A program made the translations under genes and the position numbers. Positions 1 to 8,033 of a stretch of DNA of 8,033 nucleotides are shown here, piece after piece. Positions within the stretch are counted from its first letter, which is position 1; each line of letters opens with the position of its first letter. The stretch lies in assembly GCA_009859145.1 (NCBI GenBank), contig VRVR01000053.1:210331-218363 (forward strand), in the 5' to 3' direction. This stretch comes from Andalucia godoyi And28 (lineage: Eukaryota > Protista > Jakobida). The notes under the pieces were generated by a model, which was not told the DNA's origin, did not search any database, and saw only the letters and a list, made by a program, of their open reading frames with translations.

Positions 1-360
1 GATGCACTAAATACAGGAACAGAACAGAGAAAAACTGACATGAATGATGCTTTTTTATTAAAGAGCGTTTCCCGATTTGGACTGGTTTTGATGAAAAGGC
101 AAAGACAGGTCAAAAAGGCATCTCCAATATCGTTTTTCTTTTCTCTTTCTTTTGGATTTTCATTGCAAAAAGGATCTTTTGCAGTAGGAATGCGCTTCGC
201 TCTGACTGCAGTCTCCAATTCAACCAGTTCTGCACCTCTCAGAACTCGCCAGACTGTGTTCCAGAGATTGATGGAAGGTATGCCGTTCTTCCTCCGTGGA
301 TGCCCATGCCCTCTGTCACTGGACAACAGGGTCCATCGGAATTGCGCCCTTCAGGCGTAA

Positions 361-2343
361 GAAGCCATCCGTCTTGCATTCGACGAAGAAGAACTGCTGC
401 CAGAGGAAAACTTCACAGAGCCCCACCAGTTGATATCCCTCAGAACTCTCAAGCAACGAACCGCATCCCGGGTGGCAGAGCTGTCCCTTTCTGACATGAT
501 TTGGAGTCTGTTCCCAGGATGCTCTGCTGCATGGAGCGTAGTCATGATGGGCCAGCAGCTACGACCTGCCGTTTTCCAGCGAATCGGAAGACTCGAAATG
601 GAGCCCACTTGTTCGGAACTCGAAGGTGATCTCAGGAAGAATAAGATTCCGATATGTGCATGCGACGAAAGATGTGAAGCATGTGGAGATGTGCAAGCGG
701 GCCGTTATGTCAAGTTGGCCTGCGGGCATGAACTATGCGTAACATGCTTCGCGAGCGTAGACCTCTCGTCCCGAATGAGCCGGTGGCCGGCGTGCTCTTG
801 TTTTCCATTCGGACGATATTTTCAGATTCAAGGCCCGTTCCCTCCAGTAGAAAGCAACGACAAATTTGAATGAGTCCTGGAGAGGACGGAGTGCAGGCAA
901 TCGCATGCGGGGAACTGACAGCAGCTGGAAACGGACACTGTCGCGGAAGAGCTTCCATCGTGAACAGGAAAAAGATATGGAAACTACTTTCGATACAAAT
1001 AATTGTCGATGTTGTTGAATATGCTTGAATATCATCTCAACAGTGGTATGCGTTCTGATGCAGCGAACACGGCAAAGTTGTGGAGTTCAGTGAGTCTCCC
1101 TTGCAATAGAACGTGTTCAAAGCCACCAGAATGGGGACGGACCTTGAAGTCGTTCGGGACTAATCAGCACCTCACTCTACACCGAGGCGATGCCTTCGAA
1201 GCACAGGTTGCTCCATTGATTCGGTGCCGTCAAAAGCAGCGAAGAGAGATATAAATGCCGAAAAAGATGTCAATGGGAAAGTCATTTTGAACTGTGCTGA
1301 TCCACTTCCGTCAAAACCCTACAGGAACGCAAGTGCATGATACCGCAAGAGTGGAGTGATTTCGTATGCACGTGCGTGTGCAGTTCTTCGTGGAGTTCCT
1401 CGTTGGGGTCTCCACATATTCTCTTTGAGGTGAAAGACCGTTTGTGTGGGCCAGTAATAACTGTGCAATGGAGGAAACTTCTCGCCTTTTGCATTGAAAA
1501 GTCTTTGTTGCCGAGCATTTGCTCTTCTAAGAAATTTCTCTACTGTTTTGAAAGGCTGCATGGATGTCTCTGATGATTTCGTTATTGCAAAATGACTTTG
1601 GGAACGGAAGGCCTGTCCGGCTATTGAGTCCGTTTCGGCTGAACAAGACCATCGCTCCGAGAATGCATGCTGTTCTCTGTCCAGGGATGAAGTGCCAAGG
1701 CAATTAGTGGAAGGCCCTTCACAGGATACTCGGAAATCACGTTGCTCGGTGGGTACTTCGCAATATCGAGTGCAGCAGAACCTGCTGCGCTCAAGGTCCA
1801 ATCCAATACTGCTTCAAGATGCCGTACGGGTTGGCTCTTTTCAACGACTGGGTGTGTTCGAGTTGTCCCCGAACACAAAGGAGAATGTGCTCACTCCATT
1901 GAGCTTCTATCTTCCTGTTGTGGAGCGGAATGGGTGAGAGCTGTATTGCTTCCTCCTGCTTTTCTCCATCAAAAGTATTCTTCCGGGTGTTTTTCAGCAC
2001 CACTTGATTGTCTCCTGTCCATTTCGAAAATGGGGGGTGCGACACGGCAAAGAGCACAGCAGGTGCTCGCTGAGCCAACCATGATGGTAATTCTCACGAA
2101 CGTTGATCTCTCCAGAATTCCGTAGGATTGAATTTTCAAACGGCTGCCAAAAGCAGAATATGCGTTGGTACCCCACAAGAATGCTTCATTCCCAAACTGG
2201 AGAATGAACTGCATCAAAGATCCATACAGAGAGAAGAGGAAATCGACATGTGTCGATGGATGGTCGTTGCGGAGAGACATTTGTTCCGAGTGGGCGCGAA
2301 ATCTGGGAAAAACCATCCAGACGTTTGCACGGACAGTCTCTAG
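361..2343 (+). pseudogene. Probable decayed RING-finger + ankyrin-repeat gene with multiple stops and frameshifts; boundaries approximate, may begin at ATG 190
   Basis: RING in frame 1 (673-795). Ankyrin-like remnants follow in frames 3 and 1: LTAAGNGH (915-938), FKATRMGTDLEVVRD (1116-1160), DINAEKDVNGKVILNCA (1248-1298), VEFLVG...*GERPFVWASNNCAMEETSRLL (1390-1491), LLQDAVRVGS (1809-1838), SPNTKENVLTPLSF (1866-1907), LSPVHFENGGCDTAK (2008-2052), GKNHPDVC (2305-2328). These are interrupted by TAA/TAG/TGA stops and frame changes. Confidence 0.55.
673..795 (+). other. C3HC4 (RING-HC) zinc-finger motif with the 7th ligand changed from Cys to Trp
   Basis: C-x2-C-x12-C-x-H-x2-C-x2-C-x12-W-P-A-C. 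TGG at 784-786 is one base from TGC/TGT, which would restore C-P-x-C. Confidence 0.7.
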
Positions 2344-2406
2344 GAGAAACATTCTCTTCTTTGAATAATCTATTACTGCTTTTGGTTTATTTCTGCTTTT
2401 TGAATC

Positions 2407-2478
2407 ATGACTTCAAAACAGCAACTGCTTCTCTCGTTTTTGTTTATCTTTTTCTCGCCATTCTGGCTAGCGTCTGCT
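2407..2478 (+). other. Predicted signal peptide MTSKQQLLLSFLFIFFSPFWLASA, cleavage after A-S-A
   Basis: Basic n-region, hydrophobic core LLLSFLFIFF, and small residues at -3/-1 (A-x-A). Confidence 0.8.
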
Positions 2479-5400
2479 GTCCGCACAAATGTTGCGTTTA
2501 ACGGACGAATTGGATTGTTACCGGAATCCGTCGTGACGCCGCTCAAACTGCAGATTTCTCATGAAGTGTTTGGGAATTCGCTCCACCCGGTGGAATCCAC
2601 GAGGATGATTTTGCAAGCTACAGTTGGAAATGCAACTTGGTGGTCTTCGTTGAAACCGCACATCGAGGCATCGGAGCTGGGTTTAGTAGAGGACAGTGCT
2701 CTTGGTTTTGTCGTCGGTCTTGTGGGTCAATATCGACAGCGATCTTCTCATCAATTCGCTGATTCTAAGCAATTCAATGCAGATCGACTATTGGGGTTGA
2801 CGAAGGATCCTATCAAGATTCAAAAACCAGAATGCATTCATCCTGATCACGTGCATGGCGATCATCAATTGTACACGGGAGCCGTTCATCGACCAGTTGA
2901 CACAGACAGTCATTCCAATACACTATATCGACCGAACCATGCGCATCATGCCCCTCGTGAACCGGCTTCTCTGAATCCGCCAACATTGCTTCACGATGTT
3001 TCTGAAGAATTGATGGAAACCCATGCGATCTCGTATGCGCCGGACTGCGCTGTTCTTGCTGATTTGTACGTGAGTACCGACGGACCCAACTGGAATCGAA
3101 TCAACTGGGGGCCTTCCTTGCCAGCGAACTTCTCCGCAGCATGTTGTACTCCGATACTTGGAGGATATTCGTGCGATCCGGAAACTGGAAGAATTGTGAA
3201 AATTGATTTGAATGCGAATCTGCTGTCGGGACCGATTCCGGCAACTCTGGAGAATCTATCGCTGCTTCAGTATTTGGATCTGTCATTCAACCAGCTGGTT
3301 GGCGTAATTCCAGAAGCAATCGGTTCTAGGCTGAACAAATTGCATCGCTTGGACCTGGATTCGAACCAGCTGAGTGGATCAATTCCGTCGTCACTGGGCA
3401 ATCTGGCCCAACTTCAGATCTTGGCCCTGTTTTCCAATCAACTAACAGGATCCATTCCAGAATCGTTGGGCAATCTGGCCCAGCTTGAGATCTTGGCTCT
3501 GTATTCCAACCATTTAACAGGATCCATTCCAGAATCACTTGGGAATCTTTCGCTGCTTGGGAGTTTATTTTTGTATTCCAATCAGCTGACAGGATCCATT
3601 CCAGAATCCCTGGGCAATCTTTCGCAACTGCGGTATTTATATCTATCGTCCAACCAACTAACAGGATCCATTCCAGAATCCCTGGGCAATCTTTCGCAAC
3701 TGCGGTACTTATATCTATCGTCCAACCAGCTGACAGGATCCATTCCAGAATCACTTGGGAACCTTTCGCTGCTTCAGGAGTTCGCTTCGTCCTCCAATCA
3801 ACTCACTGGATCAATTCCAGCGTCGCTTGGGTATCTGCCGCAGTTGCAGCGGATGGACTTGTCCTCCAATCGGCTGTCTGGATCGATTCCTGCATCGATC
3901 GACAATCTGTCGCAGATTCTAGAGTTGGACTTGTCTTCCAACCAGATGACGGGACGGATTCCTGCATCTATCGGCAATCTGTCGCAGTTGCAGCAACTGG
4001 ACTTGTCTTTCAACCAACTCTCTGGGTCGATTCCTGCATCGCTTGGGAATCTGCTATCTCTTCAGTACTTGGACCTGCAATATAACCAACTCACCGGATC
4101 GATTCCCGCGTCACTGGGGAATCTGTTGTTTCTTCTGCAGTTAGATCTGCAATCCAATCAGCTTAGTGGACCCATTCCAGAATCGCTCGGCAACCTGTCG
4201 CTTCTTCGGCAGTTATATTTGCAATCCAACCAGCTCAGTGGATCGATCCCAGCATCACTTGCGAATTTGGTTGTTTTGCGTGTTTTGGATTTTCACGAAA
4301 ACAACTTGTCAGGCTTTCCCGCGGATCTTTGCACAGCATCCTCGCTGCAAATTGTAGTGCTATCTAACAATGAGTTGGTTGAATTTCCGAATTGCAGTTC
4401 TGCCCCTTTCATTACACTTTTGCTGTCTGCCAACCAACTGTTGAGTTTTCCATTTGATCATGTCTTTTCATGGCCATCTTTGCAGTATCTGGACGTTTCT
4501 CGAAATCATCTTGTCGGATCATTTCCCCTTGTCCCAAACAAGGTTTCATTGAAGGTTTTGTCTCTTGCGCATAACAATTTCACTGGCACGTTTCCCTTAA
4601 CTCCTTGCGGTTATAAATCGGTTGATTTTTCTTCTCCCGAATCGGGGTTGCTCTTGTTGGACGTTTCCGGGAATGACATTTCTGGATTCGCGTTTGGGAA
4701 TCCTGTGTCTGGTTGCGAATCACTGTGCACCAACAACTACTGGTCGTTGACGACTCTCAAACTTTCTGCGAATGGTTTATTGGGAACTGCCACAGATCGA
4801 GTGTGCAATTTTTTCGGTAATACGTGGACGGGTGGATATCTTCCGATATCCCAGTTCCTCAGACTGTTTCCGTCCCTACAAACCCTCGATGTGAGCCACA
4901 ATCACTTGGATGCACCGTTTGACAGTGTCTTTGATCTTCCCCAAATTGTTTCCCTGGACCTAACGCATAATCCGTCTCTGCGTTTGGATATCGCTCTCTC
5001 CCCATTGAATCGACCCAAAATGAATCTGAGTGCATCCTCGCTGTATGCGTACAGTGACAACATGACATGCTACCAATCGACGTATGGGTCGTTGGCGGTG
5101 CAAGTGGACCCATCCTTCTTCGCATTCTCCAACTGTCAATGTCGCTCTGGATATTACGGAAAACCACCAAATTGCCGGAAATGCAACGGGTCTTTATTGA
5201 ATGCAGCATGCTCCTTTCAATCCGATGATGCTCAAAGCTCTTTTTCCTCTAACCCCTTTGTAGCATGGAGTGCAAGCGGCAATATCTTTGCGAATGATGG
5301 TTACTATGCTAGTCCATCGTTCAGTTACCGACAAATGGTGGAAAATGTTGGCTATCCGTCTTCCATTCAGCCTTGCCGTGGCGCTGGAACCGATGAAACC

Positions 5401-6693
5401 CCCTGCAAGTCATCAACAAGCGGACCGTGCTCAAACGGATATGAGGGTCGTTTGTGCTCCAAATGCTCGGTCGGCTTTTTCCAAAGTGGGGATAGTTGCC
5501 TTTCTTGTCCTTCAGGTGTTCCTCTCGTACTATTCGGTATGGTAATCGTTCTTGTTCTCTTCGGGTTGGTCGTGTGGTCGTTTTTCGTTGGCACATCGGC
5601 CTCCGGTTTCGCAAAGATCATTGTGTTCTTTTCGCAGTGTCTCTTCTTCATTCGTGCGCCAATGTCCAGTGGGCTCTATTCAACGACACACAGCGGTTCA
5701 TCCTTTGCGATGATGTCGCTCGCAGGACCAAAGTGCTTCTATCCGGATTGGTCATTCGATACAAATTATGGAGTGGCAGTTGCAAACACGCTCATTTTCC
5801 CGGCCATATCGGGTCTCATCTGGTTCGTAGGCGCACTGATACTGCGAGTGTCTCGCCGAGCATCCGCAGCGCGATCCAAAGCATGGTTGGACCGTTGTCG
5901 GCGAAGTGCTTTGTTTTTGTCTGTCTTCCTCTACATGCAAGCCGTCAACGCCATTCTTGCTCCTCTCGCTTGTTCCCGCGATGAAGGCGACCACGAGGAA
6001 TATTTGATTGCGGTCCCATATCACCGATGTTCGTCAACTTTGCGTGATTTGTCCATCGTGCTGTTGCTTTTCTATGTCATTGGAGGACCTGTTTTGTTAG
6101 CGTGGATTGTTTCTCGCAGTGGTGTGACGACACAGGACGATGCAGTATCGTCTCGCCGTCGCTATGTATATTCGCTGCTCTTCGGCTCGTATCGAGCGGA
6201 GTGTCGTTGGTGGGAGTTGATCGTCACCGTTCGCCGTGTTCTGTTTGTTTCAGCCTTTGCAACTGTGCAATCCCGATCTTCGATTCAAGCGCTCCTTGTG
6301 CTGATGGTGCTTGGTGGGTCTATTCTGCTCAGCAGTTTGTTTTCTCCATTTCGAAGTCTTGCTGAAAATAGTTTGGAAACGCTCTCCCTCCTTGTGCTCT
6401 TGATCAATTTTGGTATTGAACTAAAGTCCCTCTCTGTTGGCGCTGTGGATGTTGAAACTGTGGGAGCTGTTTTATTCGCATTGAACACAGTGACGTTTGC
6501 GAGCTTGGTGCTTGCAATTCTGTCTACCCACTGGCGATCTGTCATGGACCGAGCTGCCAGTGTGATTGGATCCGGAGTACTGGGTGTTGTGCGAAAGGGG
6601 AGCATCCGTGGACGACGAACCGGATCGATGCCACGCCCATCTGGTCAACTGAAGTCTCCGTTGTTGGATTCGGCGGAAAACAGTGAACTGTGA
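2407..6693 (+). CDS. Secreted-ectodomain leucine-rich-repeat / Cys-rich / multi-pass (~9 TM) membrane receptor-like protein, 1428 aa, no introns required
   Basis: Single open frame from ATG 2407 to TGA 6691-6693. It has an N-terminal hydrophobic signal peptide, LxxLxLxxNxLxGxIPxxLGN repeats with about ten N-L-S glycosylation sequons, a CxCxxGYYG...CxxGYxGxLCxxCxxG...CxxC stalk, and ~9 hydrophobic helices. The ORF and repeats are seen directly; the family is inferred from motifs. Confidence 0.93.
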   Translation: MTSKQQLLLSFLFIFFSPFWLASAVRTNVAFNGRIGLLPESVVTPLKLQISHEVFGNSLHPVESTRMILQATVGNATWWSSLKPHIEASELGLVEDSALGFVVGLVGQYRQRSSHQFADSKQFNADRLLGLTKDPIKIQKPECIHPDHVHGDHQLYTGAVHRPVDTDSHSNTLYRPNHAHHAPREPASLNPPTLLHDVSEELMETHAISYAPDCAVLADLYVSTDGPNWNRINWGPSLPANFSAACCTPILGGYSCDPETGRIVKIDLNANLLSGPIPATLENLSLLQYLDLSFNQLVGVIPEAIGSRLNKLHRLDLDSNQLSGSIPSSLGNLAQLQILALFSNQLTGSIPESLGNLAQLEILALYSNHLTGSIPESLGNLSLLGSLFLYSNQLTGSIPESLGNLSQLRYLYLSSNQLTGSIPESLGNLSQLRYLYLSSNQLTGSIPESLGNLSLLQEFASSSNQLTGSIPASLGYLPQLQRMDLSSNRLSGSIPASIDNLSQILELDLSSNQMTGRIPASIGNLSQLQQLDLSFNQLSGSIPASLGNLLSLQYLDLQYNQLTGSIPASLGNLLFLLQLDLQSNQLSGPIPESLGNLSLLRQLYLQSNQLSGSIPASLANLVVLRVLDFHENNLSGFPADLCTASSLQIVVLSNNELVEFPNCSSAPFITLLLSANQLLSFPFDHVFSWPSLQYLDVSRNHLVGSFPLVPNKVSLKVLSLAHNNFTGTFPLTPCGYKSVDFSSPESGLLLLDVSGNDISGFAFGNPVSGCESLCTNNYWSLTTLKLSANGLLGTATDRVCNFFGNTWTGGYLPISQFLRLFPSLQTLDVSHNHLDAPFDSVFDLPQIVSLDLTHNPSLRLDIALSPLNRPKMNLSASSLYAYSDNMTCYQSTYGSLAVQVDPSFFAFSNCQCRSGYYGKPPNCRKCNGSLLNAACSFQSDDAQSSFSSNPFVAWSASGNIFANDGYYASPSFSYRQMVENVGYPSSIQPCRGAGTDETPCKSSTSGPCSNGYEGRLCSKCSVGFFQSGDSCLSCPSGVPLVLFGMVIVLVLFGLVVWSFFVGTSASGFAKIIVFFSQCLFFIRAPMSSGLYSTTHSGSSFAMMSLAGPKCFYPDWSFDTNYGVAVANTLIFPAISGLIWFVGALILRVSRRASAARSKAWLDRCRRSALFLSVFLYMQAVNAILAPLACSRDEGDHEEYLIAVPYHRCSSTLRDLSIVLLLFYVIGGPVLLAWIVSRSGVTTQDDAVSSRRRYVYSLLFGSYRAECRWWELIVTVRRVLFVSAFATVQSRSSIQALLVLMVLGGSILLSSLFSPFRSLAENSLETLSLLVLLINFGIELKSLSVGAVDVETVGAVLFALNTVTFASLVLAILSTHWRSVMDRAASVIGSGVLGVVRKGSIRGRRTGSMPRPSGQLKSPLLDSAENSEL
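3043..3189 (+). other. LRR N-terminal cap (DCAVLADLYVSTDGPNWNRINW...CC...YSCDPETG)
   Basis: Helix-Trp-Cys cap immediately before the first LRR, containing an LYxxTxGxxW motif. Confidence 0.75.
3190..4266 (+). repeat. Coding tandem array of 15 plant-specific-type LRRs: one partial 22-aa unit, one 25-aa unit, then thirteen 24-aa / 72-bp units
   Basis: Units start at 3190, 3256, 3331, 3403, 3475, 3547, 3619, 3691, 3763, 3835, 3907, 3979, 4051, 4123 and 4195. The exact 20-mer ACAGGATCCATTCCAGAATC occurs at 3445, 3517, 3589, 3661 and 3733. GATTCCTGCATC occurs at 3885, 3957 and 4029. Confidence 0.95.
4267..4980 (+). other. About 9 irregular LRRs with Cys-containing insertions
   Basis: LxxLxLxxN cores persist (LRVLDFHEN, LQIVVLSNN, ITLLLSAN, LQYLDVSRN, LKVLSLAHN, LLLLDVSGN, LTTLKLSAN, LQTLDVSHN, IVSLDLTHN), but spacing is variable. 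Confidence 0.8.
5134..5508 (+). other. Cys-rich EGF/laminin/TNFR-like juxtamembrane stalk
   Basis: CQCRSGYYGKPPNCRKC ... PCRG...PCK...PCSNGYEGRLCSKCSVGFFQSGDSCLSC. Confidence 0.8.
5518..6525 (+). other. Multi-pass membrane domain, ~9 hydrophobic segments, resembling the protist CRMP-type / fungal Pkd2-Flc 'TRP-like' membrane module
   Basis: Hydrophobic segments plus motifs KIIVFFSQ, FLYMQAVNAILAPLAC, YVIGGP, YSLLFGSYRAECRWWELIVTVRR (6169-6237) and PFRSLAENSLE (6346-6378). The motifs are seen directly; the family assignment is from recall, not a search. Confidence 0.6.
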
Positions 6694-6868
6694 AGATCTA
6701 AGAAAGTTCTGTGGGTGACGTAAATTGGCTTTTAACAAATACGGAAAATGGTCCACAACACTTTTTCTGATATAATGCTGGGGACTGGTAGAGTCGCGGA
6801 CGGCGAGCAATCTGGTACACAAATATCGCCTGGGGACAACGCCGTTCAGGAGTTATACGTAAAATATT

Positions 6869-6909
6869 AATAAAATAAGGAGTTTGCAATAAAATAGGGA
6901 GTTTGCAAT
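6869..6909 (+). repeat. 19-bp direct tandem duplication, each copy carrying AATAAA (candidate polyadenylation signals for the LRR gene)
   Basis: AATAAAATAAGGAGTTTGC (6869-6887) and AATAAAATAGGGAGTTTGC (6888-6906) are 18/19 identical and followed by a partial AAT. They lie ~175 nt after the stop codon. Confidence 0.75.
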
Positions 6910-6937
6910 CCGACGAATTCCAAGACTGAGACCGGGG

Positions 6938-7055
6938 GTATGTAGAGCTCGTTCACGCGAATGAAACGGTGTGCCACACGCACCGGGGGGTTTTGTCTGA
7001 GAGCCGTTATGCCTCCCGACGTTCTGCTAATTCATGCTTTCCTCTTCAACTACAG
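6938..7055 (+). other. Candidate spliceosomal intron (118 nt)
   Basis: Donor GTATGT at 6938, branch GCTAAT at 7026-7031, pyrimidine tract TTCATGCTTTCCTCTTC, acceptor TACAG ending at 7055. Confidence 0.5.
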
Positions 7056-7157
7056 TGGTTTTTTTGGCGGGAAGCCTTTCTTCTCGCAGAGACGCTGTTG
7101 CAGCGACATGCACCATGGGTCATGTTTGGGAGCAGTGCTCATGGTGATGGGTGAGCG

Positions 7158-7275
7158 GTGAGTGTGCTCTCGTCCAGCATAGGAACTCCGGATCATCGGA
7201 CGACCGCGGCTAGACACAAATGGGACCTCGCAAATGGCTGACAGCTCCTGCGTTCGCTTCACTGTCTGAATGCAG
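7158..7275 (+). other. Candidate spliceosomal intron (118 nt)
   Basis: Donor GTGAGT at 7158, branch GCTGAC at 7237-7242, pyrimidine-rich run, acceptor TGCAG ending at 7275. Confidence 0.45.
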
Positions 7276-8033
7276 TCGAAGATCTCAAGCGTCACTTGGG
7301 GGCTGGTTTTTGAATATGGGTACCTGGTGCTATGCCAGAATGGAAACGGCTCGTGGGTTTTTGGTGTTTCGATACGCGTTAAATAGCGCGTCTTTGACTT
7401 ACTTAGTGGGGTTTTTGTGTGATCGTCTGGGGTGCCGTGGTACACCCAGCAAACGCTCCGGAACGAGAATTTGGAAAAAAAATAAAAAACTGACTCGTAA
7501 AACAGGGAAATGATCATCAAAAATGGCCATGGTATCATCGCGCTCGAGAGCGTTCGGCATGTGTGGGGACATCTGTACGTTTTTTTAAAACTTCAGTTTT
7601 TTAGAGAACTACAACCGTTGTTCTGGCAGAACACAGTATTTCACAGTAGTACGCCGCTGCTGCTCGTGCTGTTGCAGGGATCGCCGGGGAGTCACAGGAT
7701 CGCCGTGGAACCGCCATTAGTACTCACAGATATCGCTGCTGACCGAAAAGCGGAATGAAATGAATTCGCAATCTTATGTATTAATGATTTATCATATTAC
7801 CCAAGATGATGACGGTTGCTGTAGCCTGCGACTTTATTGTTTTACGCGATCCCAGTTTGATATTTAGTCGTTTTTTTAGTTGTTTGTTTTAACTCCGTGG
7901 TGTCGGCATTACTGAAGAAGACAATGTTGTGCTTTTACGATAATGTCCTGATTCAATTGCACCAAATCGGTATAGTGTCCTAACGTCCTGCAGATATCAT
8001 CAGGCATATGAACGGCTCAGTAAACGATGCCTG

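Follow-up and report, generated by a model that had tools for sequence, protein, structure and literature searches.

A predicted surface receptor of the jakobid Andalucia godoyi that joins a leucine-rich-repeat ectodomain to a probable CRMP-type membrane core

Cysteine repeat modular proteins, or CRMPs, are membrane proteins with nine transmembrane (TM) helices, an extracellular N-terminus and a cytosolic C-terminus (PMC9670195, PMC9815656). They are needed for the contact-triggered discharge of rhoptries in Toxoplasma and for the stimulated release of mucocysts in Tetrahymena, are dispensable for assembly of the secretion apparatus, and gather transiently at the exocytic site (PMC9670195, PMC9815656). 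Their ectodomains vary on a conserved core, defined as two EGF-like domains plus the transmembrane domains (PMC9815656), and TM-mediated heterodimers have been predicted (PMC9670195, PMC9815656). The core has already been reported in Alveolata and Amoebozoa; the amoebozoan case is Dictyostelium Q86I19, named as a CRMP homologue with nine predicted CRMP-like TMs and a different ectodomain (PMC9815656). The subject of this paper is a gene of the free-living jakobid Andalucia godoyi And28, found in a stretch of 8,033 nucleotides (nt) of contig VRVR01000053.1, here called the window. A single unbroken open reading frame (ORF) of 1428 amino acids (aa) plus stop codon occupies positions 2407-6693 on the forward (+) strand and is by far the longest in the window. 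Its product carries an ectodomain of plant-type leucine-rich repeats (LRRs), and its membrane module is, with high probability on sequence comparison, a CRMP-type core, which would make the protein an LRR variant of the CRMP-core family. An exact-protein database look-up returned no record of it.

Relation of the membrane module to the CRMP core

Two alignments were compared, one of 20 TM domains of the family to which the window protein belongs and one of the TM sequences of TgCRMPA, TgCRMPB, PbCRMP1 and PbCRMP2 taken from S2 Table of Singer et al. 2023 (PMC9815656). Limited to the TM domains, hhalign returned a probability of 96.9% (E 1.5e-10), its 185 aligned columns reaching from TM4 to TM8. 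When the juxtamembrane module was added, a greedy alignment gave 98.9% (E 2.9e-17) over 381 collinear columns that span the whole core. Reversal of either alignment lowered the hhalign probability to less than 1%; these reversed controls were used, and block-shuffled controls, which are unclean as a null, were discarded because intact motif blocks still align. With HMMER the four CRMP cores were matched at E values from 5e-17 to 2e-8 and the reversed decoys had negative scores. The reciprocal search, with a hidden Markov model (HMM) of the CRMPs, gave 1.7e-7 for the window core and ranked every decoy below all 21 jakobid cores.

All four CRMP cores match DUF7630 (PF24633) N-terminally at about 1e-18 and about 65 bits, and DUF7630 is therefore the CRMP juxtamembrane module. 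The jakobid juxtamembrane module has the same position and the same C-x-x-C-P ending, and falls inside the collinear alignments both to CRMPs (hhalign) and to Q86I19 (HMMER). Many jakobid members have DUF7630 scores of 17-24 bits over the last ~30 residues ahead of TM1, and one family member, P0157, passes the gathering score of 27 with 28.6 bits.

Positions invariant in one family line up with positions invariant in the other. These are the C-x-x-C-P ahead of TM1, a Cys in the TM2-3 loop, the jakobid Cys pair of the TM4-5 hairpin (aligned to the CRMP invariants C270 and C293), the motif '[RK]-Y-[GS]-[FL]-L-x-x-[GS]-[YF]...W-W-E-x-V-x-x-x-R-[RK]' around TM6 and 'P-[FY]-x-x-x-x-x-N-x-x-E' between TM7 and TM8. 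In the numbering of the family alignment, C159, D162, G164 and C178 in the TM4-5 hairpin loop are invariant, and W239, E240, R246 and R247, conserved in the signature around TM6, align to the CRMP invariants 'K-YGFL-NG-...-W-WE-...-RK'. The profile matches to CRMPs and to Q86I19 together with these aligned invariants indicate that the membrane module is a bona fide CRMP-type core.

The Dictyostelium discoideum protein Q86I19 (XP_643780.1, sequence from S1 Table of PMC9815656) was matched by the jakobid stalk and core HMM at E 6e-31 (113 bits, HMM positions 87-473 of 502), and is closer to that HMM than any apicomplexan CRMP tested. It has the same stalk pattern and TM motifs and also places a repeat solenoid on the core. 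Unlike the jakobid protein, it has a right-handed beta-helix as ectodomain (Pfam Beta_helix, E 2e-8; no match to LRRs), its TM3-4 loop is extended by a long low-complexity insert, and its tail is long and acidic.

To our knowledge the nine-TM core of CRMPs has no solved structure. The TM domain was modelled with AlphaFold2 (AF2) from the alignment of 20 family members; the model has a mean predicted local distance difference test score (pLDDT) of 81.5, a predicted TM-score (pTM) of 0.78 and nine long helices; the TM2-3 loop additionally contains a short helix and the TM4-5 loop a beta-hairpin. An earlier run on three sequences gave a pLDDT of 44.7 and was unusable. Hydropathy delimits eight to nine hydrophobic segments within aa 1038-1376. 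The loops of the nine-TM topology contain 17 K+R inside versus five outside, and all N-x-S/T sequons (16 of 16, at aa 927 or before) lie in the ectodomain; both counts, like the odd number of TMs, fit an N-out, C-in orientation, which is a predicted orientation only.

A Foldseek search of the model against the PDB found no structural neighbour (best E 0.3, all TM-scores at or below 0.25), and a sequence-profile search against the PDB returned only a spurious Pex12 fragment (E 0.19). With both searches empty, the membrane core is not a seven-TM (7TM) G-protein-coupled receptor (GPCR), a six-TM channel or any solved transporter fold. The 7TM GPCR, ABC, rhodopsin and channel folds were rejected on the empty Foldseek result, and a six-TM channel of TRP or voltage-gated type on the lack of both an Ion_trans or PKD_channel Pfam match and a structural match in the PDB. 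The Pfam matches to DUF7475 (E 5e-5, in 2 of 20 members), Pox_I5 and DUF2417 were taken as hydrophobic noise.

Compared with TgCRMPA/B, Pf/PbCRMP1-4 and Tetrahymena CRMP1/2, the window protein has the same predicted signal peptide, large ectodomain, nine TMs and predicted cytosolic C-terminus, the EGF-like modules with a C-x-x-C-P end adjoining TM1 (DUF7630 in CRMPs, DUF7630-like and under the gathering score in the window protein), the loop Cys pair, and the motifs 'YGFL..G....WWE....R[RK]' and 'PF....N..E'. Where CRMPs have arrays of Kringle, MAR, C-lectin, ephrin-receptor-like or EGF type, the window protein has a plant-type LRR solenoid; it also has only ~13 stalk Cys, a much shorter cytosolic TM3-TM4 loop and a short tail; its host is a free-living member of Discoba, and its family has at least 14 paralogues versus 2-4. 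No Ephrin_rec_like, GCC2_GCC3, Kringle or lectin Pfam match was obtained in the ectodomain, which has LRRs instead. The protein is classed as an ectodomain variant and not as a canonical CRMP, because the authors of PMC9815656 treat the ectodomain as variable and outside the core.

Domain order, LRR ectodomain and paralogue family

The features of the gene, all on the forward (+) strand, are as follows.

2407-6693 (+): complete coding sequence (CDS), intron not required; read from the ORF, which is collinear from signal peptide to last residue with the A. godoyi gene ANDGO_01900 (P0003)
2407-2478 (+): predicted signal peptide, aa 1-24, hydrophobic core aa 6-23, ASA-V cleavage-like site; from hydropathy and the equivalent N-terminus in homologues
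2479-3018 (+): N-terminal region of unknown fold, aa 25-204; a conserved block followed by a His/Pro-rich linker
3019-3183 (+): Cys-containing N-terminal LRR cap, aa 205-259, 'YAPDCAVLADLY...CC...C'; from sequence reading, found in nearly all family members
3184-4404 (+): 17 regular 24-aa plant-type LRRs (LxxLxxLxLxxNxLxGxIPxxLGN), aa 260-666; from Pfam and motif scan
4405-5061 (+): about seven irregular LRRs with interspersed Cys, aa 667-885; from a loose LRR motif scan, kept across the family
5062-5514 (+): Cys-rich stalk, aa 886-1036, 13 Cys in EGF/laminin-EGF-like modules; from the Cys positions
5374-5511 (+): DUF7630-like juxtamembrane module, the last ~45 aa of the stalk, with a C-x-x-C-P end; from DUF7630 scores and profile alignments
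5515-6534 (+): nine-TM CRMP-type core; from the AF2 model, hydropathy and homology to CRMP cores (the nine helices below from the first two)
5518-5586 (+): TM1
5602-5649 (+): TM2
5755-5850 (+): TM3
5866-5967 (+): TM4
5971-6030 (+): extracellular beta-hairpin loop between TM4 and TM5, Cys pair C1189/C1208, D-x-G-D motif; from the AF2 strands
6034-6120 (+): TM5
6151-6267 (+): family signature 'RRRYVYSLLFGSYRAECRWWELIVTVRRVLFV', cytosolic helix and TM6; from conservation in the family alignment and alignment to the CRMP invariants
6211-6264 (+): TM6
6280-6342 (+): TM7
6358-6438 (+): TM8
6451-6534 (+): TM9
6535-6690 (+): basic cytosolic tail of 52 aa, C-terminal 'PLLDSAENSEL'; from sequence reading

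The first-pass annotation, made from the DNA alone, described about 24 plant-style LRRs, a Cys-rich stalk, about nine helices and a tail of ~55 aa; motif scan, the 13 Cys, hydropathy and the AF2 model agree with this, and the tail has 52 aa. The sub-range it had singled out (5134-6525, aa 910-1373) corresponds to the stalk and TM domain. Its statement that an output domain is lacking also holds, in that the window protein has no kinase, TIR, NB-ARC, ROC or COR match in Pfam at E <= 1.

The LRR families are the only Pfam matches of high significance in the protein (LRR_1 E 7e-59, LRR_8 5e-44, LRR_14 4e-32). A strict plant-type motif scan found 15 units with a period of 24 aa between aa 284 and 644; counting also two regular units outside that pattern (at aa ~260 and aa ~453) and, towards the C-terminus, about seven irregular ones brings the total to ~24 and extends the array to aa 885. 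At the DNA level the array is a 72-nt tandem repeat (3394-4276), and the adjacent units aa 405-428 and aa 429-452 are identical. An antisense ORF of 142 aa with repeated 'ILEWIL...' units lies within the array (3326-3754, -); it is a by-product of the repeat periodicity, with no evidence of a gene. The signal peptide has a hydropathy peak of 2.13 at aa 7-25. The N-terminal region (aa 25-204) gave no match in the Pfam scan, and its block 'GRIGLLPESVV...NATWW...LVEDSxLGF' is common to the window protein and the homologues P0003, P0005 and P0007. No domain was found by Pfam in the cytosolic tail. Of 26 family members, 12 have the C-terminal pattern 'LL-(3 to 12 residues, mostly acidic/polar)-L-COOH'; the window protein (6649-6690, aa 1415-1428) is one of them, and judged by its sequence the pattern may be a dileucine-type sorting signal.

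The ectodomain resembles those of plant LRR receptor-like kinases and receptor-like proteins in the 24-residue plant-specific LRR with 'NxLxGxIPxxLGN', the Cys-flanked N-terminal cap and the extracellular orientation. The window protein differs from them in having nine TM helices rather than one, in having no Pkinase match, and in an EGF-like/DUF7630 stalk where the plant proteins have an acidic or Cys-pair juxtamembrane region.

The closest relative of the window gene is ANDGO_01900, with 72% nucleotide identity over 2.9 kb of CDS and unrelated flanks. Protein identity is 80% in the TM domain, 74% in the stalk, ~69% in the LRRs, 64% in the LRR cap and 36% in the N-terminal region. The ratio of nonsynonymous to synonymous substitution rates (dN/dS) between the two is 0.12-0.14 in the stalk and TM domain (dS ~0.9-1.35), and by this measure the window gene is under purifying selection. 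At such a divergence it may be an old paralogue. The regular array of the window protein is longer than that of ANDGO_01900 by 193 aa, or eight LRR units. This surplus and the identical adjacent units point to units having been gained or lost recently through unequal recombination. Across the family the core is conserved and the number of LRR units is variable.

A word-indexed search with the C-terminal 529 aa gave two matches, A. godoyi ANDGO_04723 (48% identity) and one metagenome fragment, and missed P0003 with its 77% identity; the same kind of search with a 20-sequence profile gave none. An exhaustive HMM search was made with a profile of 924 positions in which the LRR columns of P0001 were retained, and for that reason its best 150 matches are mostly unrelated LRR proteins; it could not list distant relatives that have the core only, and a restriction to jakobids is not inferable from it. 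At least 22 cluster representatives matched through stalk and TM domain and have the same collinear architecture. Cluster look-ups placed twelve of these in A. godoyi and four among transcripts of Stygiella incarcerata, the others being environmental contigs. A later word-indexed search gave six matches, including two further A. godoyi paralogues. The andaluciid jakobid family thus has at least 14 members in Andalucia godoyi and at least four in Stygiella (Trinity transcripts).

Database names of the relatives include 'MDIS1-interacting receptor like kinase 2', 'LRR receptor-like serine/threonine-protein kinase GSO1', 'Putative leucine-rich repeat-containing protein DDB_G0281931' and 'conserved mitochondrial LRR and EGF_Lam domain-containing protein'; A. 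godoyi paralogues are automatically labelled 'MIK2', 'GSO1', 'RPK2' and 'MSL1', names that overlook the membrane domain. ANDGO_01900 (KAF0852326.1) is listed by NCBI as 'conserved mitochondrial leucine-rich repeat (LRR_4) and EGF_Lam domain-containing protein'. Its N-terminus resembles a signal peptide, its LRR ectodomain is N-glycosylatable and it has nine TMs; the mitochondrial label is probably a false positive of a targeting predictor. The A. godoyi gene models P0011, P0019, P0155 and P0156 have little or no LRR sequence yet are named after Dictyostelium DDB_G0281931. Going by such database names alone, DDB_G0281931 may have the stalk or TM core in common with them, in which case a protein with LRRs and CRMP core may also occur in Amoebozoa.

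Two further observations concern individual paralogues. In ANDGO_04360 (P0007) the sequence breaks off halfway through the DUF7630-like module ('...CRLGY') and resumes in the TM3 region, with C-x-x-C-P, TM1, TM2 and the TM2-3 loop missing; the gap is either a mis-predicted intron or the mark of a truncated paralogue. Upstream of ANDGO_01900 and on the opposite strand, positions 2414-3936 (-) of the ANDGO_01900 locus, from VRVR01000045.1, resemble the window gene in its N-terminal and LRR portion (~67% nucleotide identity over 1.5 kb). This sequence is absent from the gene calls at that locus and may be a head-to-head paralogue or a remnant.

The flanks of the gene (window 1-2406 and 6694-8033) gave no Rfam match, no similarity to the fetched proteins and no synteny with the ANDGO_01900 locus, and the ORFs in these 2.4 kb upstream and 1.3 kb downstream gave no Pfam match beyond a weak Prok-RING_4. 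That match (E 0.068) belongs to an ORF of 147 aa at 430-873 (+) with a RING-like Cys/His pattern 'CACDERCEACGD...LACGHELCVTCF', which could represent one exon of a RING-finger gene located upstream of the receptor gene. A 19-nt unit, AATAAAATAAGGAGTTTGC, is repeated 2.2 times at 6869-6909, ~180 nt past the stop codon. The unit includes strings resembling AATAAA and possibly acts as a signal for the 3' end. The spacing of A. godoyi genes averages 217 nt in the examples of PMC7050145, and the flanks in the window are much less compact.

Proposed function and competing explanations

The preferred reading is that the gene encodes a multi-pass surface receptor with type-I orientation, belonging to the CRMP-core family, whose LRR ectodomain senses contact or a ligand and couples it to a membrane event. 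A probability of about 0.6 is assigned to this reading. The contact-sensor function taken by itself, which is argued by analogy with CRMPs, is judged a little short of an even chance. The suggestion of the first-pass annotation that recognition might be coupled to an ion flux or to exocytosis likewise draws on CRMP biology. In the proposed mechanism the LRR solenoid would bind a ligand or a surface outside the cell, for example that of bacterial prey, of another cell of the same species or of the substrate. The EGF-like stalk would act as a rigid connector, probably tied by a disulfide to the TM2-3 loop, since in both families there are seven Cys in the DUF7630 module and one invariant Cys in that loop, and it would relay the binding event to the nine-TM core. 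The core, as in CRMPs, would turn contact into a local membrane event, either regulated exocytosis or uptake; it may act as TM-mediated dimers between paralogues, and its output would be an ion flux or the recruitment of partner proteins.

Several points weigh against this reading. The DUF7630 score of the window protein is 17.2-18.9 bits, under the gathering score, and TM1-TM3 align to CRMPs at low confidence and in the greedy alignment only. The AF2 model rests on 20 family sequences, and the structural comparison covered the PDB only. The disulfide between stalk and loop is deduced from the Cys counts and not from the model. For the jakobid members the ligand, localisation, partners and output are all putative. 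We know of no report of extrusome-type organelles in jakobids, and the analogy with exocytosis may for that reason not transfer.

Two other functional explanations are regarded as unlikely, each having a modest share of the probability left. According to the first the protein is a ligand-gated cation channel like the fungal TRP-like Flc/Pkd2 proteins (PF06011), in which LRR binding or stretch would open a Ca2+-permeable path through the nine TMs. S. pombe Pkd2 and yeast Flc are reported to share a plan of signal peptide, ectodomain, about nine TMs and cytosolic tail, which the overall plan of the window protein resembles. There are conserved charged or polar residues in or beside TM6 (E1271, R1277, R1278) and TM2 (K1070, Q1077), and TM6-TM9 match positions 279-405 of the 426 of the PF06011 profile, with E 0.005-0.008 for the window protein, 6e-5 for full-length P0012 and 8e-6 for the best isolated core. 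This similarity to the C-terminal third of the profile is, however, found in only three of ~27 cores and always under the gathering score of 28.5 bits (window protein 15.6-16.1, full-length P0012 22.4, maximum ~25); the family consensus has 11.5 bits (E 0.13). Neither the CRMP cores nor Q86I19 match PF06011, the window protein has no TRP_N/ML-like domain at E <= 1, and no channel in the PDB matches the model. The first-pass annotation had spoken of a CRMP/TRP-like module. Its CRMP half is borne out by hhalign and HMMER, while its TRP or Pkd2-Flc half amounts to the weak, sub-threshold PF06011 similarity.

The second is that the protein is a surface adhesin or coat protein whose LRRs attach to prey, substrate or cells, the nine-TM module being an anchor or trafficking module without signalling. 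The large glycosylatable LRR ectodomain with its 16 sequons, the expanded paralogue family with variable LRR number and a 52-aa tail with no recognisable signalling domain are what such a protein would have. The distribution of conservation tells against it: the TM core is the most conserved part of the protein (80% identity versus 36-69% in the ectodomain, dN/dS 0.14), and jakobids, Dictyostelium and Apicomplexa share invariant polar or charged residues and invariant loop motifs, a constraint that exceeds what an anchor needs. In addition, CRMPs are required for a signalling step and not for organelle assembly (PMC9670195).

A divergent adhesion-type GPCR, an LRR counterpart of the animal LGRs that would signal through heterotrimeric G-proteins, is very improbable. 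In the PANTHER classification TgCRMPa and PfCRMP1 are GPCR-like, and the authors of PMC9670195 make the comparison with adhesion GPCRs. The LGRs also have an LRR ectodomain joined by a Cys-rich hinge to a multi-pass domain, and a few GPCRs are among the weak Foldseek matches. The LRRs of the LGRs are nevertheless of another class, and their 7TM rhodopsin fold, set against nine TMs here, has no sequence or structural match in the window protein. No 7tm Pfam family was matched at E <= 1 and no GAIN domain was detected. GPCRs and rhodopsins among the PDB matches have TM-scores of 0.13-0.21, the best GPCRs having E 0.5-1 and TM-scores of 0.17-0.21. The module is thus not the canonical 7TM GPCR that the first-pass annotation had named among the outcomes that would refute its proposal.

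An artefactual origin, whether as a chimera of an LRR gene and a membrane-protein gene made in assembly or by read-through, or as a decaying pseudogene, is barely credible: repetitive LRR DNA can mislead assemblers and the exact protein has no database record, but the 4.3-kb frame is unbroken, purifying selection extends across the junction, and the fusion recurs in more than 20 independent genes or transcripts from at least two genera and environmental contigs, including the Stygiella Trinity transcripts, and is therefore not due to chance or assembly.

Bearing on the CRMP family and on jakobid biology

The first-pass annotation held that the protein was not described as a system. This does not stand for the core, since receptors with a CRMP core are already known and have been studied functionally; it stands for the LRR ectodomain and for the presence in jakobids, neither of which was found in the literature searched. 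No paper linking CRMPs with LRRs was found there, and LRR proteins go unmentioned in the main text of the A. godoyi genome paper. What is new is the LRR ectodomain on a CRMP core, the core in Discoba and the large paralogue family.

The ectodomains found on the core differ with lineage, being a beta-helix in Dictyostelium, Kringle, lectin or EGF domains in Apicomplexa and LRRs in jakobids. The ectodomain is thus interchangeable, and an LRR array, a well-understood ligand-binding fold, is placed on a CRMP core in a free-living, non-pathogenic organism with a small genome. It is a further independent use of LRRs as a receptor ectodomain, and the output module joined to them is neither a kinase nor a TIR or NB-ARC domain. 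The database names of the A. godoyi paralogues, labelled as receptor kinases or 'conserved mitochondrial' proteins, are also corrected. The jakobid LRR receptors offer a tractable setting in which to ask whether the role of the core is that of a channel, a scaffold or a receptor.

The spread of the core over Alveolata, Amoebozoa and Discoba argues, as far as sequence comparison goes, for an ancient origin, with lateral transfer as the alternative. A wider proposal, tentative and at present rather doubtful, is that the CRMP core is an ancient contact-sensor module, possibly as old as the last eukaryotic common ancestor, that has received lineage-specific ectodomains. The 14 or more LRR receptors of the jakobid repertoire would then act in pattern recognition, detecting bacterial prey or microbes, and be coupled directly to a kinase-free membrane response (secretion, uptake or ion flux). 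If this is true, A. godoyi would have a system resembling innate immunity or serving the recognition of prey, built on a transduction module unlike those of plants and animals.

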